This document shows, piece after piece, positions 1,405 through 62,594 of a stretch of DNA of 64,000 nucleotides; position 1 is the stretch's first letter; each line of letters begins with the position of its first letter. The notes under the pieces are model-generated. The model made no database searches. It worked only from the letters and a program-made list of their open reading frames with translations, and was not told the DNA's origin. Source of the DNA: Raja brachyura (Eukaryota); contig OY740804.1 of NCBI GenBank assembly GCA_963514005.1, positions 5,456,001 to 5,520,000 of the forward strand, read 5' to 3'. The translations under genes and the position numbers were made by a program.

Positions 1405-1719
1405 CGTCAGATACTTGGAGATATACGGAAAACTTTGGATCCAAGGTAGTTGTATTAATTCCGCAGTTGTACCATCCCGTGTCTCCAGAGTGAAGATCCT
1501 CCACAGTCACAGTAAATATTCCTCGTGCCGGGTTATCTGTGATTGATGCTCTTCCACTCCGTCGGTGTTCCCCTTTTGTTTCCACTAAAACTCTACACTG
1601 GCGATCCCACCCGTGACACCAGTATTTTGTGTGTGAGCGGTACTCTGCTTCATAGTGACAATCGACTGTGACCGCTCTTCCCACAACTCCTTTTACATAT
1701 TTCTTTCCCCACAACGCAC
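1405..1719 (-). CDS. Gene A Ig V-domain exon (315 nt, phase 1-1)
   Basis: Within ORF 1385-1774; AG at 1721-1720, GT at 1404-1403. Confidence 0.92.
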
Positions 1720-3672
1720 CTGAAACGGAGAGGAAACATCTTGTGAAAATGAACAGGAAGAATCGGGTGAACATTCGGAATGATCAGGGGTGCGCTGGAC
1801 AACATTCATCCCCCCACCAACACTGGACCAGATCATCCATCGCTGCACGGACTTGCCCTCGTTTCAATTGGAAGCGTCTCTGCCATCTCCAACCCAGTGG
1901 TAGGGAACAACATCTCATATTTCCCATCGGCAGATTACACCCCAATGGTATGAGTATTAATATCTCTTACTTCAAGTAAACCTTGCATCCCCTCTCTGTC
2001 CATCCCTCTCCCACCCAAGTTGTACCAGCTTCTTGTTGAATCTCATTGCCTGTAACTAGTTCTCACTTACTACACAGCTAGCAATGGCCTGTTTCCTTTA
2101 TCATTGTTACTTTTTGCATATCTTTCATTCATTTGTTCTATATCTCTCTACACAACCGTCTATATCTCTCGTTTCCCTTTCCCCTGACTCTCAGTCTGTA
2201 GAAGGGTCTATATCTCGAAACGGCACCTATTCCTTAGCTCCATAGATGCTGTCTGACCAGCTGAGTTATTCCTGTTTTTGTGTCTATCTTCCAAACGGAC
2301 ATTGTCTCTTCTGCCCCCTCAGCATTGCCGGCGTTTCTGTCGCTGTCACGCTGCTGGGAGCGGCATCTCCCGGTCTTTGTGTCGGCTGGTGGCTTCCCAG
2401 AAGATCTAGCAGTTGTGACTGGAAGGAGACCGCAGAGTACAATATTCGGCAAATTACCTCACTTCAGCTACCAACTAAATGGGTCGCTTTAATGACCTAG
2501 TAAGAATATGAGTCAAAGATAAAATATGGGAATCTGGATCTCACTCACAATCAGCATCACAACAGCTTCAGGATGAAGGTTGGGCCTTGCTGAATTAGAC
2601 AAAAGCACAACAGAGGCAAAACAAAATGAGAAGTAAATGGTTACTTATTGCGAGAGCGCTGTTGACCAACACTCTAGCCACGAGGATTAGAGAACTACAA
2701 ATAACCGGCAAAATTTAAAAAAACAAACGAACGTGGTGTTAATTTGAGAATATCTAAGCGTAATTTACGTTCTGCTATCAGTGAGAACTGAAGTGCAGTA
2801 ACTAGATCTATGACAATTATAGGGGTGCGTTTGCGCTTTGATGTTACTTCGGCTTACGCGGGGGTGAGGCGACTTTTCGGGAGATGGTCCAAGGAGGGAC
2901 GACTAATTTAGGCAACTAAAGAACGGCGCTCCCTCTACCCACTCACCCCCAACCCCCCCCCCCCCCTCCATCTTCCCAGTGCCCCTCCCCAGCACCCCGC
3001 ACTCCAAACTGGATACATATAAACATAGGCGCAGGAGTAGGCCATTCGGCCCTTCGGGTCAGCACAGCCATTCAATATGATCATGGCTGATCATCTAAAG
3101 TCTGTACCCCTATCCAGCTTTTCCCCCATATCCCTTGATTCTGTTAGCCCTTCGAGTTAAATTGAACTCTCTTCAAAACAACCACTGCCTTGTGTGACAG
3201 AAAATTCCACAGATTCACAACTCTCGGGGTCCAAACGTTTTTCCTGGTATCAGTCCTAAATGTCCTAACGATGCATATCGGTTCCTCCCAGTAAGTTGAA
3301 GATACGTTAGCAATGATTTCTTAGTTTAGTTTAGTTGAGAGAATTCGGCCGACGGAGTACGCGCCCGACCAGCGATCCCCGCACATTAACACTGTCCTAC
3401 ACATCCTCCGGCAATTAGAATCGAACCCGTGTCTTTGGTGTTTGTAAGGCAGCAACTCTACCGCTGCACCACAGTGCCCAGCCGTACAACGGTGTTGATA
3501 CGAGAATACATGTCAATACTGTTCAGTTACATTTGCTGGGTGTTTTGTACATTTACACTCCATATATGTCAGCCATCTCTGCTGTGAAAACTAACACTGG
3601 TTATCAGAAGGTTCAGCTCTATCTCTGTCACTCACCGGGTAGGGAACAAACGATAAGAATTGGAATCCACAT
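1405..3672 (-). CDS. Gene A: CD300/pIgR-like (MDIR-type) Ig V-set receptor, 5' part (signal exon 3672-3636, V exon 1719-1405); remaining exons lie left of the window
   Basis: ATG at 3672 gives MWIPILIVCSLP+G|gtgagt. The phase-1 exon cag|GTGCG...GACG|gtac encodes ALWGKKYVKGVVGRAVTVDCHY..KYWCHGWDRQC..DLHSGDTGWYNC: V-set B/F cysteines, W, DxGxYxC and the extra C-C' cysteine pair typical of CD300/pIgR/TREM. Confidence 0.9.
3636..3672 (-). CDS. Gene A signal-peptide exon (37 nt)
   Basis: MWIPILIVCSLP followed by gtgagt donor; same length as, and homologous to, gene C exon 1. Confidence 0.88.
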
Positions 3673-6600: not shown

Positions 6601-6689
6601 ATATTGGAGAATTCTCAGGGGATTTGCCATTGTTGTGTCGCAAGCAATCAGGAGAAACACCAAAGGTTTAACGGTCGAAATTACACAGG

Positions 6690-7030
6690 GTCTCACAATG
6701 GCACAGTGGTAGACTTTGTTCCTCGCAGCGCCAGAGATCCATGCGTGATCCTGACTATGGGTGCTGTCCATACGGCATTTGTCCATTCTCTCCGTGACCA
6801 GTGTGCGTTTTGTCCGGGATCTCCGGTTTCCTCCCACACTCCAAAGACGTACAGGTTTTTAGGTTAATTGTCTTGGTATAATTGTAAATTGTCCCTAGTG
6901 TGTGTAGGATAGTGCTAGTGTGTGGGGATTGCTGGTTAGTGCGGACTAGGTGGCCGAAGGGCCTGCTTCCATGCTGTATCTCGAAACTAAACTAAACTAC
7001 ACTCAATTGAACTAAACTAAACTAAATTAA
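6690..7030 (+). mobile_element. tRNA-derived V-SINE (HE1-like) with CR1-derived 3' end; representative of many copies (e.g. 10270-10560 -, 16790-17045 -, 20200-20485 -, 21140-21430 +, 40370-40660 -, 41455-41720 +, 51120-51395 -, 54910-55200 +)
   Basis: A/B-box-like head (tggcacagtggtag...gatcctgact), conserved core ccggtttcctcccacactccaaagacgtacagg, tail ggccgaagggcctg...(aaact)n. Confidence 0.8.
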
Positions 7031-7537
7031 ACTTTACACATAATGAAAACACAATGGCTGAAAAAATGGCTATTCAATTGACAACACAGAAAGCTGATAA
7101 ATCAGTGCTTTGACAAAATATCGTCTGTTGTTACCTCTTCTGTAAAAGCTAGTCATAGCTATCACTGTTATGAACAAACGTGAACATTCTCAGTCCAGAA
7201 AATACACTCAGTGTGAAGCTTCACACTTCAGCACATATGTAATGGAGGAAGAAGTAGCTGGGACAGGCACAGCTGTGACAAAGTTCCTCCCACATTCATT
7301 GCAACCAAAGTGAAGCACAAGATGAGGAAATTCAACAGTTTCAAGACATTTTAGGCAACGGAGGCCAGCTGGAACAAACTTTGAGGTTCATGTTGAACAA
7401 ACTGACAGTGGGTAGATATAATTGAAGTAAAATCACTTGGTGACCAGTTTGAACAGCTTTTCTTTAGAGGCTGATTTCCCCCCTCCCACTTTCTGCTTAG
7501 CAGCCTGCAGTCATGGGTTTAACAGAGATTATTCTAG

Positions 7538-9000: not shown

Positions 9001-9155
9001 TTGTTTCTTGGTGTTTGCACTGGTCATTGTTTGTCTCGAGAGTTGGGGGAGAATGTGGGAATGAAGGATTATTTTTTATACGGTTTCAGAATCAAGGGGA
9101 ATATTATAGAACATGTAAAAGTGTACAATATGTGGTAGAGAATCAACATGTTGGA
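9001..9155. repeat. Left arm of an inverted repeat pairing with 10799-11024
   Basis: ttgtttcttggt...aatcaacatgttgga is the reverse complement of tccaacatgttgatt...accaagaaacaa. Confidence 0.85.
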
Positions 9156-10071
9156 TTGCTCATAAAGGATCATAAAGGACCCACAAAGGAACAAACCCGG
9201 GTCTCTGGCGCTGTGAGGCAGCAGCTCTACCGATGCGTCACTGTGCCACCCCACAAGGAATATGTAACTACAAGGAACTGCAGATGCAGGCTTATCCCAA
9301 AGAAAGTTCATGTTCATAAGTCATAGGAACAGAATTAGGCCATTTGGTCCATTGAGTCTATTCTGCCGTTCAGTCATGAATAATCTATCTTTCCCTCTCA
9401 ACCCCATTCTCCTGCCTTCTCCGCGTGACCCTTGACCCTTGTACTAATCAAGAACCTGTCAATCTCTGCTGGATATTCCTTACTATCGCCTGACACGATG
9501 GACTGAAAAGGAGGAAAGGACACTTAATTTTTATTAATTCTTAGAAATAGTTATAAAAGGTGTCAGGGGTTATGGGCAGAGAGTAGGAGAATGGGATTAA
9601 GAGGGACAAATCAGGGATGTGAGGGGGGGAGGGGGAAATCGGAGCACCACGTAATCACAGGGAGAATGTGCAAACTCCACACAGAGAGCACCTGAGCTCA
9701 GGATCAATCCCAGGTTTCTGGCAAGTGAGGCAACAACTTTACCCTTGCAGAGATTGCTTTTACACTCTGGGTGTCAGGGGTTATGGGGAGAAGGCAGGAG
9801 AATGGGGTTAGGAGGGGGAGATAGATCAGCCACGATCGAATGGTGGAGTAGACTTGATGGGCCGAATGACCTAATTCTGCTCCTATCACTTATGAACTTA
9901 TTAACTAAATTCCCAGCAAGTTGTTCCCTCATCTGTCTGAAGGAAGGTTCTGACCTGAAACATCCCCTATCCATCCCTTCCACAGATGCTGCCTGACCTA
10001 CTGAGTTACTCCAATGTGTTGTCAATGTTGAATTTAAAGATGCAGGAAGAGGTGAATAAAATAATTCTTAC

Positions 10072-10181
10072 CTGTTTTCTTTGCCTACATTCTCGCGGTC
10101 ACAATACCCCAGACAAGCAGAATGGCAAGGAATATCCAACGCATAATGTTCCATATGCGATTGTAGTTAGTATTATGTTTC
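10072..10181 (-). CDS. Gene B transmembrane exon (stop TAG at 10087-10085, donor after 10072)
   Basis: cctctttcctcttag acceptor; encodes IWNIMRWIFLAILLVWGIVTARM*; CAG|gtaag donor 13 nt after the stop. Confidence 0.88.
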
Positions 10182-16100: not shown

Positions 16101-17214
16101 ACAAACGGGACAGCAAGATTGCAAGGAATGCCAAAGTTTAACCACGCTGGCTGTTCTTAAAAAATATTCTGCTTTTCCTTGCTTCATTTCAAGATAGATA
16201 ATTTCACAATTCTTCATATCATATTGCACTTGCTTTCCCCCCAATCATCTAACCATCCTTATACTGACATGATATGGCTCAGAACAGGACATGAAGAGCT
16301 GGAGTAACTCAGCGGCTTAGGCAGAATCTGTGGAGAAGGATAAGCAACATTTTTGGGTTGGCTGCCAGCCCAGTTAGTGAAGCAGAAATCAATTAAAAAG
16401 TGTAGATAACGGATAAGTGTGCTCGGAATTAAAATGCTTAAAATGGCTTTAATTATTTGGAAAGAAAATTCAAGTCAATCTATGAAGAACAGATGCTGCA
16501 CAAAGCAGAAGGAAACAAGGATGACTCGAAACATCGTCAGAGAATTTCCAAACAATTTGTAGACAATCATGAGGTTTTTAATGCAGTCACTGTTGTAATG
16601 TAGGTGGCAAGAGGACTGATTTGTGTGCATCAACCTCCCACAAGTACAAAGAGGGGTCGGACACTCAGATTCGATCATCCAGTTCTCATAGTTGGGTATG
16701 TTTGATCTTCTGTGAACAATGTACGTAACAGATTATAGAGGTTGGATAATGGAGACTGCATGATTTCCCATTCATACAAGCGAACTTAGTTTAGACATAC
16801 AGTGTGGAAACTGGCTCGTCAGCCCACCGAGTCCACGCCGACCAGCGATTCGAGCACACGGGCACTATCCTGCACACACTTGGGCCAATTTACAGTGATA
16901 CCAAGCCAATTAACATATATATGTACATCTTTGGACTCATTAGGAGAACGTACAAACTCCATACAGACAGCACCCATAGTCAGGATTGAACCCAGATCTC
17001 CGGCGCTGTAAGGCAGCAACTCTACAACTGCGCCACCGTGCCGCACAACTGCTGATGTGAACAATCCTATAATTCGGCAAGTCAACCTCTCCCAATCATC
17101 CTTAGTTCCACTAAAACCTAATCTATCTATGATCATGTACCAATATGCAGCCAAGAGCAATTGCAGGCACTTACCCGAGAAGGAGATCATGAAACAAAGA
17201 AATACAAAATACAT
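10085..17214 (-). CDS. Gene B: complete CD300/pIgR-like single-V receptor, 164 aa, Arg-containing TM, essentially tailless (activating type). Exons 17214-17175, 12285-11953, 11152-11128, 10181-10085
   Basis: Spliced product MYFVFLCFMISFS|VTNAGLSGPRAVNGTEGQSVNITCTYGRYFSNFPKYWCKGSDWVSCTILVQT...LNDEGWYWCAIMRVFIDLRSRVKLNIIE|NTSTAKDI|WKHNTNYNRIWNIMRWIFLAILLVWGIVTARM*. All introns are GT-AG with compatible phases (1,1,2); 495 nt. Confidence 0.9.
10836..10940. repeat. 28-bp minisatellite (~4 copies) expanded inside the inverted-repeat arm
   Basis: Unit ttttacttgttctataatattcccctac repeated; single copy in the 9001-9155 arm. Confidence 0.9.
11128..11152 (-). CDS. Gene B 25-nt stalk micro-exon (phase 1-2)
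   Basis: ttttccaatcacag|ATACGTCAACGGCAAAGGATATCTG|gtaaag; exactly bridges the V-exon and TM-exon phases. Confidence 0.8.
11953..12285 (-). CDS. Gene B Ig V-domain exon (333 nt)
   Basis: Includes ORF 11942-12157; KYWC-x6-C and DEGWYWC motifs; AG/GT boundaries. Confidence 0.93.
13111..15009 (+). mobile_element. Rex1/Babar-type LINE, 5'-truncated and disrupted, itself split by a CR1
   Basis: [25 protein letters not shown] at 13125-13345 continues at 14248 ([22 protein letters not shown]); (ttttgac)n tail; gaatc at both ends. Confidence 0.85.
13348..14247 (+). mobile_element. Young 5'-truncated CR1 LINE (uninterrupted 270-aa RT C-terminal ORF 13351-14163)
   Basis: WQMEFNADKCEVLHLG, LYKALVRPNLEYGVQFWSP, FFTQRVVAVWNELP; (atatggtt)n tail. 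Confidence 0.92.
17175..17214 (-). CDS. Gene B signal-peptide exon (40 nt)
   Basis: MYFVFLCFMISFS+G|gtaagt. Confidence 0.85.
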
Positions 17215-17381
17215 AGTTTTCCGTTTTTAAAGCAAATATGATCCCAGTGGAACTTGTGATATTGTTCCTATTTTGTATCTTTGCACAGATCTGCTTGAGT
17301 TTCGAAATTACCATTCGTTACAGTAAGTATATTTATAGCAATAGCACGGGGCTGGTGACAGCATGAATTATAGAAGCCTTT

Positions 17382-22800: not shown

Positions 22801-22927
22801 TATGAGGAGTTACGATGAGGGATTACGTGAAGACCCCGCCAGCACGCATGCGCGACATTCTTCAAAGCAGTAGTGTGAAAGCACAGATACCAGTAAGATA
22901 AGAGAACTAGCATACCAGTTGACCGGA

Positions 22928-23035: not shown

Positions 23036-24363
23036 TTCAATTCAATTCAATTCAATTCAAGTTTAATGTCATTGCACAAATACAAGTATAGGTACAACGA
23101 AATGCAGTTTAGCGTCATTCTTAGTGATAGCGATATAGAAAAATAAATACAGAGTGCAGTGGTAGCAATATGGAAAATAAATAAATACAGGGTACAGACA
23201 AGTCTATCAGCTGGGCTCCGAGTTCAGCAGTCGGATGGTGTAGTTGAAGAAGCTGTTCTTCGTCCTACTGGTGCGGGACTTGAGGCTCCTGTACCGCCTC
23301 CCTGATGGGAGGAGGGCAAACAGTCCATAATTAGGGTGTGAGGGGTCCTTGATGATCTTCCCGGCCCGCTTCAGGCACCGTTTTCGGTGGAGGGCATCCA
23401 AGGCAGGGAGCGGGGCACCGATGATGTACTGGGCGGTTTTCACCACCCGTTGTAGTGCCTTCCTGTCTGCCACGGTGCAACTGCTGTACCATACCGTAAA
23501 GCAGGTGGTCAGGATGCTTTCGATGGTGCAGCGGTAGAAGTTCGTCAGGATCTGGGGGGACAGGTGGGCTTTTTTGAGCCTCCTCAGAAAGTAAAGGCGC
23601 TGCTGTGCCTTTTTGATTAGCTTTGAGGTGTTGAGGGACCAGGACAGATCCTCCGAGATGTGTACCCCGAGGAATTTGTAGTTGGAGACCCGCTCCACCT
23701 CAGTCCCGTTTATATGGATGGGGGTGTGTCTGCCCCCTCTGTTCTTCCGAAAGTCAACAATTATTTCCTTCGTCTTCTGGGAGTTGAGGACGAGGTTATT
23801 GTTGGCACACCAGGTAGTCAGGTGCTGGACCTCCTCCCTGTAGGCTGATTCGTCATTATCACTGATCAGTCCTACCACCGTGGTGTCATCGGCAAATTTT
23901 ATGATGGCGTTGGAGCCATACTTGGGGATGCAGTCATGCGTGAAGAGGGAGTAGAGGAGAGGGCTGAGCACACAGCCCTGTGGCACGCCGGTGTTCAGTG
24001 TTATAGTGGAGGAGGTGAGGTTGTTGACCCTAACAGACTGTGGTCTGTTAGTGAGGAAATCCAGTGTCCAATTGCAGAGGGAGGTGGAGATGCCAAGACC
24101 GCTGAGTTTGGTGATCAAGCTAGCGGGTATGACAGTGTTAAAGGCAGAGCTGAAGTCAATAAACAGCAGCCTGATGTAGGTGTTGTTGCTGTCCAGGTGG
24201 GTCAGGGCAGAGTGTAGGGCCGTCGATATGGCGTCCTCTGTAGACCTGTTTGACCGGTAGGCAAATTGGTGGGAGTCCAGTGTGGGGGGGAGGCTGGCTT
24301 TGAGGTGAGCCAGGATCAGCCGCTCAAAGCACTTAGCGATGACAGGGGTGAGTGCCACTGGCC
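23036..24363 (-). mobile_element. Young Rex1/Babar-type LINE (5'-truncated, intact 383-aa RT ORF 23207-24358) nested in DIRS copy 1
   Basis: [47 protein letters not shown]; (TTGAA)n tail at 23036-23060. Confidence 0.93.
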
Positions 24364-24488: not shown

Positions 24489-25513
24489 TTATTCCAGAAT
24501 ACCAAACAATAATGCCCCTATATCGGGGAAATTATAAAACAGAACTTCATATTTTTTCCTCAAACGTCTCCGGTGCGGCCACGGGTTTATTGTATAACCG
24601 CTGAAAGTTTTTTCATTACTCCAACCCACTGTTGCAAGGATGTGGTCCATTGGAACTTCCATCATCCTTGCCGCTGATGTGAATGCAGCCCTGGTGGAGT
24701 GAGATTTAAATACGTTAGTGTCCACCCCCGCTGCACCCTATACCACCCCTAACCATCTGGAAATGGTTTGCACTGTGACTCTATGATGAGGGCGTTTGTG
24801 GCTAATGAGCAAAGCCTTCTCTGTGCCCCTGAGACTCTTAGTGACCTCTATGTAGCGTAAAATGTGGGTCACGATACATAGACGGCAATCTACCGGATAG
24901 GCCAGGAAATACAATTTTTGGCCAGATGATCCAGGCCTGTCTTGCTTGAGTAACCCCTGTATAAAGACAGTTACCTTGCTATTGGATATGTTCATGGCGT
25001 CCATACTTAGCTTATGTAGGGACTGGACCCGTTGTGCCGTTACGAGTGCCATCAGCATGACCATTTTGTAGGTCAGTTTATCCAATGAATGACCCGTTAT
25101 TGGTGCCCACCCTCAGAGCATGGTTAATACAATGCTGATATCCCAATTTTGGGAATATCTGGGCTGGGGGGATTTGAATTAAATATTCCCCTCATTAATT
25201 TTGACACCAAAGGGTGAGATCCCACTGCAAGGTGATCGCAACCTTGCCCAAGATAGTTGGATAGGGCACTCCTGGCACAGTTGATGGCACTATAGCTCAA
25301 ACCCTCATCGAAATGAAGGCTTGCCAGGAACTCCAGCACTTCCATGATGGTGTCTGTGTCATATGTAGTGTTCGTTTTTGAGCAGAACACCTCCCTTTTT
25401 TTCACGTTAGTGAGGTGTCGTCTTCTGGTGGACTCCCTGCACGATGCTGTGATGACATTGATTGTTCGGTCGGAGAGTCCATAATCCAGAAGTGGCCTTT
25501 TCAAATCCTGCAA
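24489..25513 (-). pseudogene. DIRS tyrosine recombinase, frameshifted over three ORFs
   Basis: GLSYSAINCARSALS, LMALVTAQRVQSL, TISRW, HSTRAA..HILATVGWSNEKTF (catalytic R..HxxR..W signature). Confidence 0.88.
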
Positions 25514-25914
25514 ACCAACAGGTTTATCCGGTCATGGCACGGGTGACTCTGCCCTGTCACAGGGTGTACCAATAGACTCGGACGTTTATTTATTGGGATG
25601 CAAGGTTCTGTGGCCATGTCTAGTATCACAGGGAACCATGGTTGAGTAGGCCAGTCGGGAACAACCAGAATACCCGATGCAGAGTCTTGTTTAATTTTTT
25701 GCAAGACCCGACTGATGAGGCAGAAGGGGGTAAATGCATAGAAAAACAAATCCCCCCAGTGTAACGAGAAAGCATCCATCGCTACTGCCCCAGGGTCTGG
25801 TTCCCATGCAACATATGTTGATATTTGGTGATTGAGTCTGGATGCAAAAAGGTCGATATCTGGTGTTCCATACCGATCTACAATGTCGGTCCAACATCCA
25901 TTTGGTGTTGTCAT
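25501..25914 (-). pseudogene. DIRS-associated DNA N6-adenine methyltransferase-like domain
   Basis: PDIDLFASRLN, DAFSLHW, YAFTPF, LVVPDWPTQPWFP. Confidence 0.8.
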
Positions 25915-27497
25915 TACATTTGCGTGACCTGGTGTCCGCCACTGTATTTAGCCTACCTGGAAGGTAAGTGGCTGATATACAAATGTTCCTTTCTAGGCAC
26001 CAGTGCCAGATTGTATTGACCAATTCGTCACAGGATATCGACTTTATTCCACCCATATGATTGATATAAGCCACCACAGTGGTATTGTCAATCTGTAAAC
26101 GTATGTGCAGATGGTGCATGTCCAAACAGTAAGCCCGGAGTCCATGAAATGCTCCCAGCATTTCTAGATAATTAATTCCTAGTGCCGGAAGTAGAGTTAT
26201 TTTATGTGCACTCCATCTACCACCACAACTGGAGGTGGTATTAGTTGCTCCCCAACCTTTTGCGCTGGCATCAGTTTGTAGTATAACCGAGAGATTTATG
26301 ATAGTGGTGGGGTTAGTGCATTGTCTATACACCATTGTAATTCTAATTTCGCTTACCCTGGTAATTGCATTGGCCTGTCAAAATGGCCCGCATGGTGCTT
26401 GAATGCTGCTATTTTTGCCCTTTGTAGGGTTTGGTAATGTAGTGGGCTAAATTGTGTGGCTGGAAAGGCAGACATTAACTTCCCAATCACTCTGGCTACT
26501 TGCCGAATAGATGGTTTCCTGATGCCAGTAAGGCTGTTGCATGCTTCTATCAAGTCTGATGCTTTGTTTGGTGGCAAAATGACAGACATATGAACAGAAT
26601 CAATTGTGAAACCCAAATAGTCCATAGTAGTAGAAGGCATCAATTTTGATTTATCTGGATGAATGACAAAAACACAGCTTTTGAAATAGGTGCTCGGTGG
26701 CTAAGACGGCCAGTTTGGCCAACTCCAAAGTTTTTCTCATGATGAAAATATCATTGAGGTAAGCCATAACAATATGTTTTTGTTTCCTGAGACACACTAA
26801 AGCTGGTTTTAATAGTTTGGTAAACAGTCTGGGCCCTGATGACAATCCATTAGGTAGTGCTTTGTACTGCCAGAGCTGCCCCATCCAGACAAATTTCAAA
26901 TATCTGCGATGATCCTTGTCTATTGGTACTGAATCGTATGCATCCTTTAGGTCGATGCAAGCCATGAAGTACCGATTGGAAATTAGTTGTTTGGCTGTGA
27001 CAAAGGTTTCCATTTTGAAATGGGCATACTGCACGAAAGTATTCAGTTCAGTTAAATCTATGATGATGCGGCATCCACCATATTTTATTTTTAGTGAAAA
27101 TGTTCGATACGAACTCATGAGACTCTCTTTTGGTTTTCTCAATTACCCCTTTTGAATTTAGTCTTAAGAGTTCAGCATGACCTTCTGTCTTTTCTTTCTG
27201 TGAAAACACAAATTTCTGACTAGGTGTATGCTGAACAGGGGAGAGGAGTTTGTGAACAAATTAAATTTTATATCCCTGAATACTTTCCACTATGAAAGGA
27301 TCAGAAGCTAAAGTGCTCGATGCATCCCAAAACAAGTGCAACCGTCCACCAACCCGTGAGGAGTCTAAACATGCGATGTTCATGAGGCAACCAGACCCAC
27401 CAACCTCCATGGTTACCGGCGGTGCTGCGTTGGTTGCCTCTGTCCTTGTTTCTTGTGGTGTGGAGGCGCTGTGGTGTGGGGTTGGCGCCACTTCCAA
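25691..27497 (-). pseudogene. DIRS reverse transcriptase and RNase H, frameshifted
   Basis: HFKMET, IDLKDAY, LPNGLSSGPRLFTK, YLND (YLDD-like); RH TDAS..GWG, INYLE, DNTT. Confidence 0.9.
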
Positions 27498-40947: not shown

Positions 40948-40953
40948 TTTATT
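40948..40953 (-). terminator. Candidate polyadenylation signal of gene C
   Basis: AATAAA on the minus strand ~370 nt past the stop, in unique sequence. Confidence 0.4.
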
Positions 40954-41323
40954 CCTCATGACTGCAATGTCACGCTACACAACACAAAATAATAAGTCAT
41001 TGCTATAAAGGCTAGCAACATTGTTTTGATGGCACCTTTACTGAGTGAATAGTGAGTGAACCAAGTTAATTGTTTTAGCAAAAGAAACATTAATTCTCTG
41101 CAGTCAATTATGAAAGCAAAATGAAAAACACTTTGTCAACGCCCTTTATGGGCGACTATTTGCATACCTTGGGTTAGCAAGCAAAGAATTTCACTGTGAC
41201 TTGTCACATGTGACAATAAAGTATTCATTCATACATTCATTCATTCAAAATAATAATGATCATTTGGTCTTGTGGGAGAGTTGTTTCTCAGTCACTATCA
41301 CCAGTGGATCTTCATTCTGCCTT

Positions 41324-41359
41324 CTACAGCAAGCTGTGAGGTTTCGGTTCATTGGGTCC
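41324..41359 (-). CDS. Gene C terminal coding exon (GPNEPKPHSLL*)
   Basis: tttttatttgcag acceptor; phase 0 matches the TM exon. Confidence 0.7.
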   Translation of the reverse strand, partial: GPNEPKPHSLL

Positions 41360-44300
41360 CTGCAAATAAAAATATCGAAGTCATCAGATTCATTAACTCG
41401 GGGAATTGTGCTTTATTTCACAAGGCCACTCACAACAGAATTCTGCTTCCAATTAGCACAGCGATGCAGCTGATAGAGTTGCTGCCTCACAGTGTCCAAG
41501 AATTTGCTTGGATTTTGACTTTGGTTCTATCTGTGTGGAGTTTGCATGTTCTCGCTGTGGCCATGTGAGTTTCCACCGTGAACTCCGGTTTCCTCCCACA
41601 TCCCAAAGACTTGCGGGTTTACAGGTTAATTGGCCTGTGTGAATTTCCCCAAGTGTGTTGGGATTTGGGTTGAGAGAATGGGATAACATAGAACTAATGC
41701 GTACGGGTGATCAATGGCCTGATAGACACAAAGTGCTGGAGTAACTCAGCGAGTCAGGCAAGATCTTTGGGGAAAAAGGATGGGTGACATTTCAGTCGGG
41801 ACCCTTCTTCAAACTTAAAGTAGACGGGAGGGAACTGGGGTTCAGATAAGATGGCCTGCATGGTCGCAGTGGGCCAAAGGGCCTGTTTCCATGCTGTATT
41901 TCTCTCTGCTTCAATGACTGCACAACATCTACGTCAAGCACTTCAGTTCATTCTGCACACAAACATCTTGTCAAGGCCTATTGATATCTTCTTCGTAGAG
42001 CATAGGTGTAGCAATGTTAAAACATTTTGAGATTTTAAAAATCAAGTCTGCAATTTATCCCATCAGATAACGCATAAAAATAAGTTTAATTTGACACCTA
42101 ATTCACTTTCATATCTTCAGTATTAAAAAAGTTATGGCCATTTTCATACTCGGAAATTAGCAACTTGTTTCCTATTGCTTTTCTATTGACTTAACACAAA
42201 AGTTGTGATCGAGGACAGCCAAAAGCCCATAACTTTCTTAAAAATTAAGAGAACTGAAATACATTTTCAGTTATTATAGATTGAAGTATTCTGAAACAAA
42301 TATGAAACAATCTTACTTGGATGACCTGAAATTAAAGTATATAATGAGTTAGTTACCCAATTGTAACTAATTACAAAATTCAATTACTAGATCTAAACAT
42401 CTATCCATTTCTTAAGAAAAAATTAACATTTTTTTTAAAGCTTAAGTGTCCAATTAACGTTCACACAATAATTCACAATATAACATGATTTTTAAATCTA
42501 ATTGTCATTAATTTATAGGCCAAATTGAAGGAATTTAGTGTTTAATGCCTGTAGATTAATGGCCATTTAAATCAGCTTGCGAGTGGGAATTTCTGGAACG
42601 CGATAGATTGGAACGTTGCGGTTGTGGTGAATTTAAACCCCATATCGGCAGGTAAAATTCTGCCGGTTCGTATGGGGAATAAATCACCTTTTCGCAACAT
42701 TAAATGGTGATTAAGGTAATCTAAAAAAGCAGATTTATATGTAAAAATAAACAGCTTTCACTTCCCTGTCCCCCACGTAAAATCCGTCCCCGTTGTCGGC
42801 GTTCACGGCATTAGGAGCTCATTTTTATTTTACTCCAGCGCTGAAATAGTCGGGCTATTTAAAATAAAAAAAAATCACTTACCGGCAGTCGGAATGAATC
42901 TCCAGAAATATCTCGCACTCCGAGAAAATACAGCTCCGGATGGCAAGGGGAAAACCGCACTTTAACCCCGCCCCCCCCCCCCCCCCCAAAGGCGCCAAAG
43001 TCGCGCACACGGCCAGTGACAGAACTGCAGCACCGCTAAAGTTAAGTATTGTAACATACCTAATAGGTGTGGCCTGTATTTGTGAAATACTTTATCTAAA
43101 CACTTTCCGTTTGTTTTATTTTATCAGCATGTTTGAAAGTATTAATGGACATCATTTGGAATCAGTCAGCGATTCTGATGATCTCTGCAAAACATACCTT
43201 CCTTATACTTGTGAACAATGAGACTGAGATACTGCAGATCCCAAGCAGAGCGAAGTACAGCCAGCGTCCCACCTTCCATGTCATGGAACTGAGCAAAGGG
43301 GGAAAGATACAGAATCAGTGGGAGAAAACAGACTAGTTTGTGTTGGAAACATTCATATCCTAATTGTTGTGAAATCTCTGCATGGAGCAGGGTACAGCAA
43401 CAGAGCCCAGGGAGTTCAGCTGGGAAATTCCACGGTCCAGGATCTCGACCCAAAACTACACCTATCCCTGTTCTTCAGAGATGCTGCCTGACTCGCTGAG
43501 TTACTCCAGCATTTTGTGTCTAGCGTTGATAAAGTTAGATAAGAAAAGATGGGAGAAGTGACGAGTGGTCTGTAAACACCAGCATGGACCAGCTTAGTTG
43601 ATCTTTTCTGTGCCTTAAATCCTATGTGACCAGATGTAACTCTGCGTAATCCTGGAACCTCATCACATTTAGGGTATTGTGTGCATTTCTGGTCACCATG
43701 TTATAGGAAAGATTTTGTCCAGCTGGAAAGGGTGCAGAGAAGATTTACGAGGATGTTGCTGGGACTCGAGGGCCTGAGCTATAGGGAAAGGTTGAGCAAG
43801 CTAGGTCATTATTCCTTGGAGAGCAGGAGGACGAGGGGTGATCTTATGGAGGTGTACAAAATTAAGAGATGAATCAACAATTACTTTCTCATCCTTTTTC
43901 ATTACATTGGCACATTTGATAGAGCTGCTCTCTTAAGGCGCCAGAGACCTGGGTTCGATCCTGAACGCAGGGTGTTACCTGCGTGGATTTGTACAATCTC
44001 CCTATGACCTCGTGGGTCTCCTGCAGGTGCTCTAGTTTGCTCTCACATCCTAAAGGCATGCGGGTTTGGAGGTTAATTGGCATCTGTAAAATTGCCTTTA
44101 ATGTGTAGGGATTGAACAATAAAGTGGTACAACATAGAACTAGTGTTAACGGGGGGATCGAAGATAGACACAAAAAGCTGGAGTAACTCAGCGGGTCACA
44201 CAGCACCTCTGGAGAGAAGGACTAGATGACATTTTTCGTGTTGATACACTTCTTCAGTGATCTAAGGCTGCTGTGGACATGTAGGGTGGAAGGGCCTGTG

Positions 44301-47300
44301 TCCGTGCTGTTTCTCTAAAGCTAAAAACCAAAACCAATAGCTAGAGTCCATTTGGCCCATTGAGTGTATGCTGGATCTTCGATCATTCCTTTCAATTCTA
44401 CTGCGCACTCCGATCCCAACATTTGAATCGATTGAAGTCAATACTCTGATGCACTTAACTCGCAAATGAAAGAGGAAATTATCTTCCAATTAATTCTCAT
44501 AAGGAAGTAGAACAAATCACAACAGCAGTAATAACATAATTGTACCGTTCCGTGCAGGTGGATCGGGTGGTGTCATTTTGACTATCATTGGATCTTTTTT
44601 CTGTACTTGCAAACGGTGATTCAGTCACTTTAGGTTCTGTTGAGACAAGGAAATACAATTCAGCATCACCTGCTTTTCACTTGAAATACAAGAGAGATAC
44701 AAGATACGTTACATTTATTTGTCACGTGTGCCAATTGGCACAGTGAAATGAAATCACCATGCAGTCATGCAGTAAATCAAAGAACACAACACAGAGTTGA
44801 TAGAATTCAACATAAAACATAAGTTCATAAGTCATTGGAGCAGAATTAGATCGTTTGGAACATCGACTTCGTCAGTTCATGTTCATATGTGATAGGAGCA
44901 AAATTAGGCCATTCGGCCCATCAAGACTACTCTGCCATTCAATCATGGCTGATGTATCTCTCCCTCCTAACCCTATTCTCCTGCCTTCTCCCCATAACCC
45001 CTGACACCTGTACAATCTCTACCTTGGAAACATCCAGTGAATTGGCCTCCACTGCCTTCTGTGGCAGAGAATTCCACAGATCCACAACTCCCTGGCTGAA
45101 AAAGTTTTTCCTCATCTCAGTCCTTATTTTGAAACTGTGACCCTTGGTTCTGAACTCCCCCAACATTCTGGACTTCCCCAACATTTTCCTGCATCTACCC
45201 TGCCCAATCCTCTAAGAATGTTATATGTTTCTGTAAGATTCCCTCTCATCCTAAATTCCAGCGAATACAAGCCCAGTCGACCCATTCTTTCATCATATGT
45301 CAGTCCCGCCATCCCGGTCTCACCAGAGCCCTTTGTAATTCCTTGCTCCTAAACTCAAATCCTCTTGCAATGAAGGCCAACATGCCATTTAGAATTCTCC
45401 ACTGCCTGCTGTATCTGCAGGCTTATTTTCAGTGACTGATGTATAAGCACACCCAGGTCTCGTTGCACCTCCCCCTCTCCTAATCTGACACCATTCAGAT
45501 AATAATTTGACTTCTTGTTCTTGCCACAGTGGATGGAGATGGAACATGGAGATGGGGATTGGCAGGGGATGGAGGGAGGGGGAGCGGAGGATGGGAATGT
45601 GGAAGAAATGTGTGCACATTCAGATTGGATGGGATTGGAGCAGGATTTGTTCGTTATCTCAAAATGGAGAATTCATCGTTCATGCCTCTGGGTTGTAAAC
45701 TTCCCAAGCCAAATATGAAGTGTTGTTTCTCCAGTTTGCGTCTGGCCTCAATCTGGCAACGGAGGAGGCCCAGGACAGAAATGTAATTTAGATACATTTG
45801 ATATACTTGTTTCTCACTGATCTGTTCCTGTCCGATCATTAGTTTGAGTTGGAATGCAAACCTCTGACAGGGTGATATTTCATACAGTTCAGAGGCAGGG
45901 AAATGTGCTGAGCGTCCCAGTTGAAGTGGGTGGCCGCTCAGTGGGAGAGAGCCCGCACTGGGTGAGAGGAACATGAGTGGGGTTTCCTGACCCCCGCCCG
46001 CTCCCCACAGGTCTCTGCACTGCTGCGGAGCCTTGGAATATCTGTGCTGCCCTGACTCTTCCCGGAGAAACATGGATCAGGCGTTTCAGTGGAGACATCA
46101 AGTCTTGTACTCACTGGAATTTAGAAGATTGAGGGGGGAATTTGTCGAAACGTCCAAAATTCTTAAGGGGTTGAACAGGCTAGATGCAAGAAGATTGTTC
46201 CCGATGTTGGGGAAGTCCAGAACAAGGGGTCACAGTTTAAGGATAAGGGGGAAGTCTTTTAGGACCGAGATGAGAAAAAAAAAATTCACAAAGAGAGTGG
46301 TGAATCTGTGGAATTCTCAGCCACAGAAAGTAGTTGAGGCCAGTTCATTGGCTATATTTAAGAGGGAGTTAGATGTGGCTAAAGGGATCAGGGGGTATGG
46401 AGGGAAGGGAGGTACAGGATACTGAGTTGGATGATCAACCATGTAATATTGAATGGCAGTGCAGGCTCGAAGGGCCGAATGGCCTACTCCTGCACATATT
46501 TTCTATGTTTATATGTTTCTAAGTCAATCGCTGAGAAACGTACCGTCTGATACAAGGAGATGAACGTTAAACATTAGATCAAAGCCAGGTTTAGTAATTC
46601 CACAGCTGTACCATCCTGTATCTCCAGAGTGAAGATCCTCCACAGTCACAGTAAATATTCCTCTTGCCGGGCTATCTGTGAGTGACACTCTTCCGCTCCG
46701 TCCGTGTTGCCCATTTGTTTTCAGTAAAACTGTACACCCGCAAGTCCACCCGTGACACCAGTATTTTGTGTGTGAGTGGTACCATGATTCGTAGTGACAA
46801 TCGATTGTGATATATTTTCCCACAACTCCTCTTACAGATTTCTTTGCCCACAGAGCACCTGAAACTGAGAGGAGAAATCGTCATAAAATGTACAGGACAA
46901 ATCTACTTAACACAGCATTTGCTGGCCCACCCACTCTTCCCCTAACCAACGATGGGCCGAATGGTCCAACCCGTGTCTGGACATTCACTTACCCTTGAGC
47001 CAAACACGAAATGCCGGTGGAACTCAGCAAATCTGGCAGCATCTGTGGAGGGAATGGACATGTGACGTGTCGGGTTGGGACCCTTCTTCAGGCTGATTAA
47101 AGTAGGTTGGGGAAAGCTGGAAGAGAGGTGAAGATGGGATAAAGCCTGGCAAGTGACAGGAGGAAGGTAGACACAAAATGCTGGAGTAATTCAGCGGAAC
47201 AGGCAGCATAACAAGTGGATACAGATGAGGGGGGAATTTGGACTGGTTCACGGTGGACAAAGACTGGAGGTGAAAAGCGGTCAGAAGGTTGTCAGATAAG

Positions 47301-56688: not shown

Positions 56689-56967
56689 TCAATGAGTCAC
56701 AGTGGCATAAATACCCTGCACAGTGTTCTGTGGATTGTGAGGAGAAGGAGCGTTCTGACGGGCAATTTGGCTGACGCTTTGAGATGTAACATCTGAATAG
56801 GTGACATTATCCTCCCCAGTAGCGGAGTGAGTCCCTGTAGATTTGCTTTGAAATTCCACTCCTGCATACACAGTTTGATATTGATTAGAACAATGGGCAG
56901 CTTCCTTGTTGCCTTGAATGTCTGACAGTGTTGCATAAACGATGCTCCCTTTTCCGGTTGGCAATTC
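56689..56967 (-). CDS. Gene D terminal exon with four inhibitory/switch tyrosine motifs
   Basis: ORF 56689-56964: IVYATL, TVYAGV, VTYSDV, GIYATV. Confidence 0.88.
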   Translation of the reverse strand, partial: ELPTGKGSIVYATLSDIQGNKEAAHCSNQYQTVYAGVEFQSKSTGTHSATGEDNVTYSDVTSQSVSQIARQNAPSPHNPQNTVQGIYATVTH

Positions 56968-59900
56968 CTGAAATACAAAAGAGAGGTTGAGGTTGAGCAG
57001 GCTAGGACATTATTCCTTGGAGCGTAGGAGGATGAGGGGTGATCTTATAGAGGTGTCTAACATCTTGAGAGGAAAAGATTGGGTAGATGATCGGGTAGAG
57101 AACCAGATGAAATTGGTTTATGATGAGGGGGGAAAGATTTAATAGGAACCCGAGGGGTAACTTTTTTACAAAGAGTGTGGTGGGTGTATGGAACGAGCTG
57201 CTGGAGGAGGTAGTTGAGGCAGGGACTGTCGCAATGTTTAAGAAACATTTAGATAAGTACATGGATAGGATGTTTGGAGGGATGTGGGCCAATCTCAGGC
57301 AGGTGGGACTAGTGGAGATGGCTCGACCGCCGTGGAACCAGTGGAGGGAAGCTGCCGTTTCTAGCCCCGGTTTGCTCCCGAAGACCGGGACTCAGTGAGG
57401 AGATGGAAATAACCCCGACAGCAGCAGACGCTGGTCAAAGGGCTGGCAAGAAGGACCCAGGGAGGTCTTGCCTTCCACACCATCAACGTTGGCTGTGGGA
57501 GGCATAACATGCCTTTATGGCAAGCTGCAGTTGAGAAATGCCACCAAAACCTGATAATTTTACTTCGGAGTCACGTGAGTGATTCCGTGAAGAACCCCGC
57601 CAGTGCGCATGCGTGTCAGTACGTCAGCCGCATTGGCGCAAGCACCAGACTGGCAGGGCAGCGCTCCTGCCAGCGGTAAGTTAAACCTAGAAGGTAAGTT
57701 CGTTTTTACTTACCAGGGTTTTTCAAGCAGGAGCCTCTCTTCACAGAGGTTTTCCTGCCAGTTGCACAGCCCGACGAGTGAGCCGGTTATGGACTGTGGG
57801 GAAACCCCGGTCCGACAGCGGAAGCAGATAACCGGCAAAAGATCGGTTTGTGGGATAAGCAGCCGCTGACAAGGCAGTCAGTGGCTTTCCAGCCTGCGGG
57901 GATGCCGTGAAATGGCAAGAACGTAACACCAGAGTCGCTGACAGTGCGGTTAGCGGCTCACAGACGTCGGTCCTCAGGCAGGGAGTAAAAATTGTGGAGA
58001 AATGACTCATTCAGCCCTTTTAGACTTGGGTTAGTTGGGCTACAAGAGTTTTCTCTAATAATAAAGTTTACATGTATGTTATAGAGTTTTTCTTAAAGAC
58101 AAAAGTTAAAGTCAAAAAAGTTTATTGTCATGTGTCCCTGACAATGAAATTATTTCTTGTTTAGCACAAGTTGCTGTGAAAGGTTAAAATTGCTTTAACC
58201 CTTCACAGGTAAAGCTCTACACTAAAAAATTGATTTAGTGAGCATACACTGTAATAGCGCGGGCCTATGTGACAAGCCGCGCCAGCAGCGCCTGGGATAG
58301 TGCTGCTTCATGTGTAATAGCGTGGGCCTATGGGACAGGCTGCGCTAGCAGTGCCTGGCAGGGCTGCTTCATGTATGAAAGCGCCGGCCTATGGGAGAGC
58401 TGCGCCAGCAGCGCCTGGGACAGGGCTGTTTCATGTCAAAAAGCGCCGGCCTCTACGAGAGGCGGCGCCGGCAATGCCTGGGACAGGGTTGATCAAAGTA
58501 ACACACGTCTGCTAGGCCCACGGAATTGGCGGAAGATTCCCCGCCGGGGCTGGATAGCAAAATAATAGGCCTGCGGAGTCGGGGGATGATTCCTCACCGG
58601 GGCTGGATAGTGCGTTTGAAACGACTATCCCAAATGCAGCAACTATTGCATACAGTGCTACAGCAGGGCACACACCAGCAGGAGGAGTGTCAGCACCACC
58701 CTGAACAAAAGGTGCCAGCAGCACCTAGTAGAGAGCTGCTTGATAGCACCCTAATGGTGATGAGGCGCGTGCCATGGGCCATCTTAGCTCTGACACCGAC
58801 TATGATGGTAAGGTTGAGCCAGATGTTCCACCTCTGCAGGCCGCACCAGCAGCGCCAGTTGACAGAGCTGCTTCCGGTCTCCCTCTTGGAGGCAGAGACC
58901 AAGACGGGTCAGTATCCTGCTGACGCCGAGTCTCAGGGTATGGTCATGGTGCAGACCACAAGGGATGAAGGGCACGTGTTAGAGGTACCTTTTCGTGACA
59001 ACAAAGTTGACATCCCAGCAGAATGTTCCATTCGGGTACAGGTCCAATGGGGTCATATCAGCATATGTATCCTGCGGCAGCGCCTATTGAGGGCTGCCTA
59101 CAAATCGCCCTCTCTGAGGAGGGGAGTGTGAAAGGTCAAGATATAACTGACTCCAGGCTCTAAAGAGGTCGATGGAACATACTAGAGCACATATGTGCCG
59201 GCAGTGAACAGCGCAAACAGGTAATGTGAGAGCCAGCCGCCTAATCTGTTATTCAGGTAAGGCCTATTCAACAGGGGAGAAAACCAGGCAGATGAATCAA
59301 TTCAGGCCAATGGCAGGCAAAGGTTCACCGTTTCAGAACGCACCCCAGGTGCTCATCGGCAGTAGGCGGTTCACTGGAACTGGGGGCAGCATGACAGCTG
59401 GGCAGAAGTTCCACGCACCATACCAACCCTACTCAACAAAGTGGGTCTGGCACTTCCGAAACATGGGTAAGTGCAACAGTCACAAGTTGTAATATTTACA
59501 CTTGTTTGTACAACACACAAAGGATAAAAACATCTGCTTAGAGGCACAGTACTAGCATTCCAAGCAAGTTTGTATTATGGCCAGGGTTGTCTTTAAAGAT
59601 AAGGTTCAGAAATCGGGCCAGAGTTCTCATGCAAAGCACCCATGGACTAAGGCCGGAGTGGCCTGTTTATTATGCAAAATGTCGGGCATATGAACTTTCC
59701 GAATATGAAAACTTCTTTTCCTGACTAACAACAGATTCATAAGTGTCCCAAAGATCCATTCTGTGCAGTTCCCATTACAGAGGTTATCAAAGACAATATA
59801 ACTGTACTAATAACAGTAAAACATTGTGGAATGGGATAAACTGTTTGTTGGTCATTGGGATTTACCTTTAACTATTAATTAGCCTGTGACTCCACCCTGT

Positions 59901-62594
59901 GGCAAGAGATTGGAGTTAATAGCAACCTGTTATAAAACTGAATTTTATTTCATCAAGAATAGTTGGCAAAATAGTAGCTGTGATTCAGCTGAGCAAATTA
60001 AGGAACTGATATCGTGCAAAGTAGCGACCTCTCAAAGGCACGTAGACCATTGTTAACAACCTTATGCTATTCAGCTGAAGCTACCTCAGTCACAATGATG
60101 AACAAACAATATTCAGCATTGCTCCAGTAGTTTGGTCATTCTAATTCAGTTATTACAAACTGAGGCTAAGGGCTCTAAGGTGAGAAGTTCGGAATACCAT
60201 CTCTAGTTGGAGGTAGTGGGGATTTGCATGAGTTACCAATTCTTCAGTTGTTGGTATCAACTAAATATATACACTAGATGCACCCCATGGGTAAGGGGCT
60301 ATTGAGCGAATATACATATTCTACATGCTCAACTTCAAGTTGCTACACTACAGTGGTGGCATATGTTAGTCACATGGCAATCAACTAAAAGTATCCTGTA
60401 ATAATTTACCTAATCTCCTTGGCCACTGGTGTATCATCCAGTTCAGTTTGATGACAACACAGAATAGGTATTGGATCTCAAAGTATTATGAAAGTATGGT
60501 TCAATGCTACATCGAATATCGACATGTTGGTTCATGTTTATTCACTGATTGCAAAAATATGTGGTAGAACAGTGCAGAGAAATACATTCACGCTACAAAA
60601 GGAGGAATGATCTTTTATGTTTTTCTCCATTTTGCCTCATTAGTCGGGTCTTAAAACAGTCAGCAAGACCTCACTTTAGATTTCGTACTGTCGGACTGGC
60701 TAAGCAGCCATGTTGTCTGCTTTCATCAGGCATAATAATACAACGGTATGCGGTTATTCTAAGAAACGAAAGCTTGCTGGTTCAAACTGTGGTTCAGGAA
60801 ACCGGCCTCTGCATAATAAAACAATTATTGACTTACACATTCTGAATGGATTGACTTACAGCTCAAGTTGTCACATCAACCTATGGATGTGCTCACTATA
60901 GAGTGCACGGATAGCATCCAAAAAAGCAGTGCATTCCCACTGAGGGGATCGGAAGTGGTTTTGTTTAAATGTTAATGTTACATTTAATACGATAGAGATT
61001 ACTGACATCTCCCAGTACATTCTTAAATGGAATTTGACAATAATTCAGTTCCTGTTTGTTGCAGCCACTACGGCTGCAACAAACAGGAACCACTCTGTCG
61101 GGTTCAACCCCGGATATTGAGTTGTAAAAGAGATCTTGACACAAGTTCTCCCACTACAAGAATATGCAGTTTGGATATTGAAAATGTCTTAACATTACTT
61201 CACCAGGGGGTTGGTTCCAGCTACATCCTTAGTCGTGACACTAATATCAGCACAACGAGGGCAAACATTGCAAACGCTGTGGCGAGATCGGATGGAATTG
61301 GCTGCAGGTGCCATTACATTTTACATTCTGATCTACACAAACAGAGCAGACCAGGGTTGACAGGATTTAAGATCATTTTCGGCTACGCCACGGTTTCACG
61401 TCTATGTGGGAGGGCAGGCTTGCTACATTATATCAAGGCCACCAGAATCCTAAGAAGTGTGGAATCAGCATTGTTTATTAATCAACAAACAACCACACAA
61501 GGGAAGGTCGGTTCAGACTATTTCAAGGTCGCTGCAGCAGGTTCTGGTTTCTGCAGGTATTAACACTGACAATTGTATATCTCATTCCACCAGGGCAGCT
61601 TCAACATCAGTGGCCAGGGCAATGGACATGGACATTCCCATTGACCATATCCTCACAACCGCAGGATGGTCAACTGAATTGATTTTTAATTTTTTGTTTA
61701 CCATTGGCCGGTTACTGACCTGGGGTTTTTTGTCCATTCTGTTTTGCGTCCACTTTAGCCTCCCCTGAGATACAGGGGTTGCTATTGATTTCTTTATTAA
61801 CGTAAACCATTAATACATTTGAATCAATATCATGCTTAATGCATTTTTTGATTATTCACCCATCCTGAGTCAATCAATGCAGTGAGACGCCGAGATTTGG
61901 ATCTGCGGCATGAAATCACAAAGCTTCTAACCCTTCACGGAATCACTCACTTGACTCCGAAGTAAAATAATAAGATTAAATGAGAACTTACCAGTTTGGT
62001 GATTACGTGCCCTCCACGCCCAACCCTCTCTCATAAAGATCATCTGGTAGTTCTCGAGTCACGCACCTTATGTCACTTCCGTAATTGTTATTTGTGATTT
62101 CATACCGCTGCTTTGAAGATTGACGCGCATGCGCACTGGCGGGGTTCTTCACTTAATCACCAACGTAACTCCTCATAAAATCAAGATCAAACTTCAAACT
62201 ATAAATTCTCATTTAATCTTACTATTGTTGCATATAGACTCAGTGGGTTTCTATGCATGATATACACATTATGTTTCCATGGGCAATAGACAATAGGTGC
62301 AGGAGTAGGCCATTCGGCCCTTCGAGTCAGCACCACCATTCACTGTGATCATGGCAGATCATCCACAATTAGTACTCCGTTCCTTTGAAATAATCATCTG
62401 ATCTGTATGCATAAAATAACCTTGATGGACATTGACACATTTGATAATAAAGGAACCATAGAATCATTGAAGCAGATTAGTGACGTTGAATTACAGAATT
62501 TTGTAAGTTCTCAAGTACTCGGAGAATTCACACTGTGCCGTCTTTACCTGCATTTCATTGTTATATGCTCTGGGAGGTTTGTTCCCCTCTGATT
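56689..62594 (-). CDS. Gene D: last two coding exons (62594-62548, 56967-56689) of an ITIM/ITSM-bearing inhibitory receptor; upstream exons lie right of the window
   Basis: ttttccag|..SEGNKPPRAYNNEMQ|gtaaag (phase 1-0) joins ttttgtatttcag|ELPTGKGSIVYATL..TVYAGV..VTYSDV..GIYATVTH*. Membership of the same Ig family is inferred from position and orientation. Confidence 0.82.
57556..62226 (+). mobile_element. DIRS1-type element (copy 2), internally decayed, in the last intron of gene D
   Basis: 5' end ttttacttcggagtcacgtgag; ICR 61933-62006; right ITR 62121-62152; terminal extension to 62226; remnants FSPFCLISRVL (MT) and TISR..HSTRAAST..HILTTAGWS (YR). Confidence 0.9.
58251..58495. repeat. ~62-bp GC-rich tandem repeat (4 copies) inside DIRS copy 2
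   Basis: Units agcgc.ggcctatggga..gctgcgccagcagcgcctgggacagggctg.ttcatgt. Confidence 0.85.

Follow-up and report, generated by a model that had tools for sequence, protein, structure and literature searches.

A probable MDIR gene cluster with charged-transmembrane and ITIM-tailed members in the skate Raja brachyura

What kind of receptor system is encoded by a series of small, widely scattered immunoglobulin-type exons in a skate genome? The question is raised by a stretch of 64,000 nucleotides from Raja brachyura (contig OY740804.1, positions 5,456,001 to 5,520,000), referred to here as the window. It contains no runs of N and is rich in retroelement fragments. The window very probably represents part of a cluster of modular domain immune-type receptor (MDIR) genes, a CD300/pIgR-like family of the immunoglobulin superfamily (IgSF) in cartilaginous fish. 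Searches of the 64 kb with tblastn, using V-like open reading frames (ORFs), located three V-set exons, one each in genes A, B and C, and a single tyrosine-rich tail ORF, assigned to gene D. The four genes share the minus strand and are transcribed in the order D, C, B, A. Exon models were built exon by exon, by checking phase and splice sites and by homology searches with single exons; of the 13 exons recognized, nine do not exceed 97 nt. The preliminary description of this DNA had proposed four co-oriented genes with mostly tiny exons, two of which (B and C) assemble across canonical sites in matching phases to give one V domain, an arginine-bearing transmembrane (TM) segment and a tail without tyrosine. 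The exon models bear this out, with AG...GT boundaries throughout and one weak donor, in the stalk exon of C. For the window, exon structures, domain family, orthology and motifs are demonstrated. The cluster belongs to a family that has already been described; the novelty lies in the members and the locus map, not in the kind of system.

The identification is anchored by gene B. This gene comprises four exons (495 nt, or 164 codons plus stop; phases 0>1>1>2), with AG...GT at every internal boundary.

17214-17175, minus strand: leader exon of gene B, MYFVFLCFMISFS, donor GTAAGT; the counterpart in MDIR ABC86795.1 is MDFVFLYFMITFS, with 10/13 residues identical.
12285-11953, minus strand: V-set exon of gene B, Pfam V-set 8e-18.
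11152-11128, minus strand: stalk micro-exon of gene B, 25 nt, N-TSTAKDI-W, phase 1 to 2, donor GTAAAG.
10181-10085, minus strand: TM exon of gene B, KHNTNYNRIWNIMRWIFLAILLVWGIVTARM and stop; 90% identical to the C-terminus of ABC86795.1, with the stop position shared.

All four exons align with ABC86795.1 (A0S0E7), a 164-aa MDIR of the clearnose skate, Rostroraja (Raja) eglanteria, and share its length, micro-exon and stop. The V exon matches this protein at 89–91% identity (E 5.5e-62) and the Amblyraja radiata 'CMRF35-like molecule 7' (XP_032898780.1) at 85–86%. Counterparts of the micro-exon peptide read NTSPAKDIW in ABC86795.1 and NPSTSKDIW in the A. radiata RefSeq protein, and the leader exon was recovered independently by a leader scan. 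The membrane span, IWNIMRWIFLAILLVWGIV, contains Arg, and the tail, TARM, has no tyrosine. Sequence comparison identifies gene B as orthologous to ABC86795.1, a published MDIR. Because the latter is a cDNA product, it provides good indirect support for the splicing pattern of B, micro-exon included. The charged-TM form of MDIR is the one designated MDIR1, and ABC86795.1 immediately precedes MDIR2 (ABC86796.1) in accession order; from this we infer that B corresponds to MDIR1.

Two further observations concern the ends of gene B. A consensus donor, ACAG|GTAAGA, follows the TAG stop codon at a distance of 13 nt (10071-10087, minus strand), and the frame past the stop reads AKKTG; all three orthologues end likewise at ...RM. 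This suggests that the short tail is an old truncation of a once longer one, the donor now being left in the 3' untranslated region (UTR). At the other end, an N-terminal extension of the Leucoraja B-like protein XP_055510913.1 (MVISKLKQSCAKIQNRNNITSSTGIIF...) matches the sequence just before the B start at 76% (17192-17314, minus strand). The B 5' UTR or promoter-proximal region is thus conserved between skates, and the start of the Leucoraja model may have been called too early.

To which branch of the IgSF do the V domains belong? The exons of A, B and C each exceed the V-set threshold of Pfam. Compared with solved structures, the V exons have their best single-domain match in CD300LF/CLM-1 (1e-17 for C, 3e-21 for B), with further matches to CD300A (4e-16) and to every domain of pIgR. 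Weaker matches are to NKp44 (1e-7 to 4e-9), TIM-4 (7e-8), FCMR (2e-5) and TREM2 (approx. 2e-4). These V-set matches are far beyond chance. All three V domains (A, B and C) show the cysteine pattern C...YWC...C...YxC, which in HMMER alignments coincides with the cysteine pairs of pIgR D1, the second pair aligning with the C–C' pair of that domain (KYWC...C versus kywcrqgasgmC). Each receptor is thus predicted to have a single V domain with the canonical B–F disulfide plus a C–C' disulfide, as in the CD300 family. Mammalian CD300 receptors share the single V-set domain, the extra C–C' cysteine pair and the clustering of ITIM-tailed and charged-TM members (ITIM, immunoreceptor tyrosine-based inhibitory motif). 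They differ in the charged TM residue, which in the window receptors is an Arg placed towards the outer end of the segment and in activating mammalian CD300s is Lys or Glu. Sequence identity between the two groups is low, and related genes in skates have C2 domains in addition, a feature absent from CD300 genes. The TREM/TLT, NKp44 and TIM receptors fall in the same broad V-domain group as the window, but with far weaker similarity than CD300 or pIgR; the nearest relatives lie elsewhere.

In a maximum-likelihood tree, 26 V domains were compared, comprising the three window exons and every V domain of the retrieved homologues; B-type and A/C-type domains separate with support of 100/100. The split into at least two V subfamilies predicted in the preliminary description is therefore recovered. 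The B-type clade contains window B, the R. eglanteria MDIR and proteins from Amblyraja and Leucoraja. Window C groups within a skate clade (95/88). The B V domain is merely 34–38% identical to those of A or C. Other skates give hints of synteny: B-like and C-like homologues lie on one contig in A. radiata and likewise in L. erinacea, and C-like and D-like homologues lie on one in R. longicauda; in A. radiata and R. longicauda the paired homologues also have neighbouring RefSeq accession numbers. RefSeq models for relatives in Amblyraja, Leucoraja and Rhinoraja exist already under the names 'CMRF35-like' or 'pIgR-like'. The homologues place the locus within MDIR, a family that had earlier been named for comparison only.

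Cannon and colleagues (2006, Immunogenetics 58:362; GenBank ABC86795.1 and following) reportedly described the clearnose-skate MDIRs as IgSF receptors, activating as well as inhibitory, that form a large multigene family. The window resembles this system at three levels. Gene B reproduces one of its products in length, micro-exon peptide, Arg-TM and stop. The same mixture of charged-TM genes (B and C) and an ITIM-tailed gene (D) is found in a skate multigene locus. The ectodomains are of the CD300/pIgR/TREM-related type, as established by Pfam V-set and by the CD300LF, CD300A, pIgR and NKp44 structures. Two differences are apparent: approximately 10% of the B V residues differ from ABC86795.1, which represents another genome or a paralogue, and A and C, and probably D, belong to the second V subfamily, matched only to automated RefSeq models and to no published MDIR cDNA.

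If B and C represent activating-type receptors, is an inhibitory partner encoded beside them? Gene D supplies the candidate, within the same 64 kb and on the same strand as the Arg-TM forms.

62594-62548, minus strand: cytoplasmic micro-exon of gene D, 47 nt, x-SEGNKPPRAYNNEMQ, phase 1 to 0, donor GTAAAG.
56967-56689, minus strand: tail exon of gene D, 279 nt, 92 codons plus stop, with ITIM IVYATL, immunoreceptor tyrosine-based switch motif (ITSM) TVYAGV, ITIM VTYSDV and a degenerate GIYATV.

The ITIM/ITSM tail reported earlier for D therefore resolves into two ITIMs, one ITSM and one degenerate ITIM. A Pfam search of the tail returned no match. An exhaustive protein search returned five, the best being Rhinoraja longicauda XP_078277136.1 ('pIgR-like isoform X2'; E 2e-37, 82% identity, residues 779–869). 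In that protein a D-type micro-exon and tail are contiguous; before them come a V domain of the A/C type, a stalk rich in Ser and Thr, and a TM segment without charge, YIIVLSIAGVLLVVMFACLLWCL; the window micro-exon aligns with ESEWNKPPRKYNNEMQ, which there immediately precedes the tail. Motifs 1–3 (IVYATL, TVYAGV, VTYSDV) are conserved in position in Hemitrygon and Narcine. The Rhinoraja tail keeps motifs 1 and 2 and has Cys for Tyr in the third. Motif 4 is degenerate (G at −2) and among the Rhinoraja, Hemitrygon and Narcine sequences is canonical at that position only in Rhinoraja (VIYATV). The V domain preceding the Rhinoraja tail is 68% identical to that of window C and is sister in the tree (94/76) to the V domain of an Arg-TM protein from the same species, XP_078277148.1. 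The two Rhinoraja proteins are encoded on one 36.9-Mb contig, with accessions 12 apart. Such sister V domains on ITIM and Arg-TM chassis support a paired-receptor arrangement, as it appears in the Rhinoraja relative rather than at the window locus. Because the ectodomain of D lies beyond the window, pairing here rests on that relative. Of the paired-receptor system first envisaged, the side-by-side occurrence of activating-type and inhibitory-type genes stands; the pairing itself is seen in a related skate.

Alternatively, D may be the tail of a long pIgR-like inhibitory receptor built of V–C2 repeats and not a single-V partner of A and C, in which case pairing would be looser. This is the most serious competitor, although unlikely. 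Other homologues of the tail are indeed multi-domain, with V-C2-V-C2-TM-ITIM in Hemitrygon and V-C2 in Narcine, and no V or TM exon of D was found between 62595 and the window end at 64000. On the other hand, the closest homologue, the Rhinoraja protein with 82% tail identity, has one A/C-type V domain, stalk and TM before its tail. Its extra N-terminal domains end in a TM segment and basic stop-transfer of their own, giving the appearance of two fused genes. The isoform contains two TM segments and two complete receptor units, of which the N-terminal V-V-C2-V-C2 unit ends in its own TM and basic anchor. Hydrophobic stretches near 58.7 and 61.3 kb were considered as a TM exon for D and rejected: the former reads as repetitive or transposon sequence, and homologues match neither. 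The 5.6-kb D intron also contains near-repeats of approximately 60 nt (CATGAAGCAGCCCTGCCAGGCACTGCTGGCGCAGC-like units; 58270-58560), adjoined by a 201-aa plus-strand ORF without a Pfam match.

A working mechanism can be proposed by analogy with CD300, KIR, LILR and other paired receptors. B and C would reside at the cell surface and signal via an adaptor with an immunoreceptor tyrosine-based activation motif (ITAM), whose membrane Asp would pair with the receptor Arg. The ITIM/ITSM tyrosines of D would be phosphorylated by a Src kinase and recruit SHP/SHIP-type phosphatases, which would damp signalling by B and C. With A/C-type V domains on both chassis, related ligands could give opposite signals.

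Is the second Arg-TM gene, C, equally intact? Five exons were assembled (597 nt, 198 aa; phases 0>1>1>2>0), all with AG...GT boundaries.

50560-50503, minus strand: leader exon of gene C, MRSAFKTMLVPILLICFLP, donor GTGAGT; 84% identical to the leader of Rhinoraja XP_078277148.1.
46864-46544, minus strand: V-set exon of gene C, Pfam V-set 1e-13; 72–76% identical to skate homologues.
44636-44546, minus strand: stalk exon of gene C, E-PKVTESPFASTEKRSNDSQNDTTRSTCTE-R, phase 1 to 2, weak donor GTACAA.
43288-43198, minus strand: TM exon of gene C, SMTWKVGRWLYFALLGICSISVSLFTSIRK, phase 2 to 0; 86–93% identical to homologues.
41359-41324, minus strand: last coding exon of gene C, GPNEPKPHSLL and stop, acceptor TTTGCAG.

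The membrane span, WKVGRWLYFALLGICSISVSLF, contains Arg, and the tail, TSIRKGPNEPKPHSLL, is without tyrosine. An initial search with C found proteins of 68–72% identity in Leucoraja erinacea and Mobula birostris, together with a Logan contig of 1,028 nt, whose 191-aa protein runs through V, stalk, TM and tail without interruption. A search with the latter protein added models from Amblyraja, Rhinoraja, Hypanus, Hemitrygon, Hemiscyllium and Chiloscyllium. Every exon of C has a counterpart in Amblyraja XP_032898776.1, Rhinoraja XP_078277148.1 and the Logan contig. In tblastn the stalk matches the Amblyraja protein at 71% (E 5e-10) and the Rhinoraja protein at 67% (E 3e-8), and 10 of the 11 residues of the last exon are identical to the ends of XP_032898776.1 and the 191-aa Logan protein.

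The possibility that at least one gene is a decaying copy and not a working receptor arises chiefly from C, whose ancestral stalk donor seems to have been lost, leaving only a weak in-frame GT. Homologues end the stalk exon ...TEC-Y; the window has CA in place of their GT, and the donor GTACAA at 44545 lies 3 nt upstream of the old junction suggested by the Tyr codon of the homologues. The alternative donor preserves the frame, however, and the V exon donors of both A and C are non-consensus too (GTACGT). All five exons are open, in matching phase and 67–93% identical to expressed or modelled homologues. A ratio of nonsynonymous to synonymous divergence (dN/dS) of 0.94 between the A and C V exons would also fit decay, but values near 1 are usual in ligand-binding domains of expanding immune receptor families. 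Decay is accordingly rather improbable.

Several candidate features of C were discarded. A 25-nt stalk exon at 43773-43749 fits the phases but lies within a high-copy interspersed repeat, matched by tens of contigs per sequencing run, and homologues support 44636-44546. A fossil ITIM exon 3' of C (NVTYSDI, 40073-40053) is a seven-residue chance match in AT-rich sequence, and the 67 nt shared by the sequences 3' of C and of D belong to a common repeat. Descent of C from a D-like gene, with its last exon homologous to the D micro-exon, was likewise rejected, since the two share only an 11-nt match (E 7.6). No decayed C2 exon was found inside the V–stalk intron by tblastn with the C2 domains of XP_032898776.1 and four further homologues. 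Two additional cysteines occur in C: a fifth in the V domain (WTCGC) and a membrane-proximal one in the stalk (STCTE), the latter kept in the homologues from Amblyraja and Rhinoraja. An interchain or additional disulfide could be formed by these residues.

Gene A is represented by two exons.

3672-3636, minus strand: leader exon of gene A, MWIPILIVCSLP, phase-1 donor GTGAGT; matched by tblastn to homologue leaders including that of XP_032898776.1.
1719-1405, minus strand: V-set exon of gene A, phase 1 to 1, Pfam V-set 6e-12.

As first proposed, A is a close paralogue of C: their V exons are 83.3% identical in nucleotides and 68% in amino acids (dN 0.186, dS 0.198). Just 3' of the V exon, a unique intron block of 298 nt (A 1384-1087, C 46101-45805), with no other copies in the window, is 92.6% identical. 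Divergence between A and C is thus 16.7% in the V exon and 7.4% in the intron block (Fisher p 5e-4), and synonymous-site divergence (dS approx. 0.20) also exceeds that of the intron (binomial p 0.005). Two explanations fit the contrast: the V exon may have undergone diversifying change, or exon and intron may have had separate histories of exchange. The latter would mean that exon-sized modules are exchanged or homogenized independently and that paired forms arise by such exchange.

The region around the A and C V exons differs in other respects. The V–stalk intron of C carries a high-copy repeat insertion of approximately 420 nt (46102-46523), about 20 nt past the V donor, which is absent from the A intron; its flanks align with A at 83% and 93%. 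At the other end of the exon, C has tandem acceptors 6 nt apart (CTCAG|TTTCAG|GT), the second at 46858, and use of the upstream acceptor gives the LPVSGALW seen in homologues. The corresponding upstream AG is CCG in A (46858-46866 versus 1719-1727, minus strand). With this AG lost, the mature N-terminus of A would be without the Val-Ser of C and most homologues. Two elements lie in the 24-kb gap between C and B: a DIRS-like retroelement (24741-27142, minus strand), in which reverse transcriptase (2.5e-11), an RNase H-like region and fragments of a tyrosine recombinase (N-terminal and catalytic) are recognizable, and, adjoining it, a LINE-type reverse transcriptase ORF of 383 aa (23210-24358; RVT_1 2e-29).

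The nearness of pIgR to CD300 raises a last alternative. The pIgR, FCMR and FCAMR receptors share the V-domain subtype and disulfide pattern of the window genes, all pIgR domains align, and several relatives are named 'pIgR-like' by RefSeq. They differ in that B and C have one V exon each rather than two to five, with no further Ig exon between the V and TM exons, and in that B and C have a charged TM and lack a transcytosis-type tail. That the single-V Arg-TM receptors of the A/C type might be Fc-type or polymeric-IgM receptors of cartilaginous fish, akin to pIgR D1, FCMR and FCAMR, rather than CD300-like sensors of lipid or self ligands, is a faint prospect: the best pIgR stretch for the C V domain is D1, including complementarity-determining region 1 (SHTKYWC versus RHTRKYWC), FCMR is among the structure matches (2e-5), and a 2014 survey found neither pIgR nor classical FcR in shark genomes (PMC4016189), but similarity to CD300LF and CD300A exceeds that to any single pIgR domain and the family, in contrast to single-copy Fc receptors, is large and evolves rapidly.

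A number of observations nevertheless weigh against the identification of the window as an intact, paired MDIR cluster. Both outer genes are incomplete: only the leader and V exon of A are in the window, its 3' exons falling beyond the window start, and the V, stalk and TM exons of D fall outside. The Rhinoraja protein XP_078277136.1, a computed model, looks like a read-through fusion of two neighbouring cluster genes. With its weak, shifted stalk donor, C could be poorly spliced. Four sequencing runs mapped to 41250-47000, none recorded as RNA, yielded low-coverage contigs that matched only interspersed repeats at 90–95% likeness, and in these runs the V, TM and last exons of C have a depth of 0 to approximately 1. 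Searches of a collection of 5.8 billion proteins returned homologues, but not the B and C products of the window itself. In shark genomes the 2014 survey found no pIgR, no FcRL, no classical FcR and no FcR gamma chain; the last of these absences bears on the proposed adaptor (PMC4016189). Among these sequences, expression is known for the cDNA product from R. eglanteria alone and is implied for the Logan contig by its uninterrupted 191-aa protein.

Assignment to the MDIR family is the very probable answer to the question posed by this locus. The idea of a hidden micro-exon system is modified: the micro-exons are supported by homology, but MDIR was already known and annotation pipelines recover the micro-exons in related skates, as with NPSTSKDIW in A. 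radiata. For Raja brachyura, exact exon maps are provided of four MDIR genes, two of them complete and two partial, including a micro-exon of 25 nt, and a published skate cDNA product is now linked to a genomic structure. In the Rhinoraja relative, one V subfamily is found on both an activating and an inhibitory chassis. These maps are useful for annotation of the cluster and for the study of paired-receptor evolution in the oldest jawed vertebrates.

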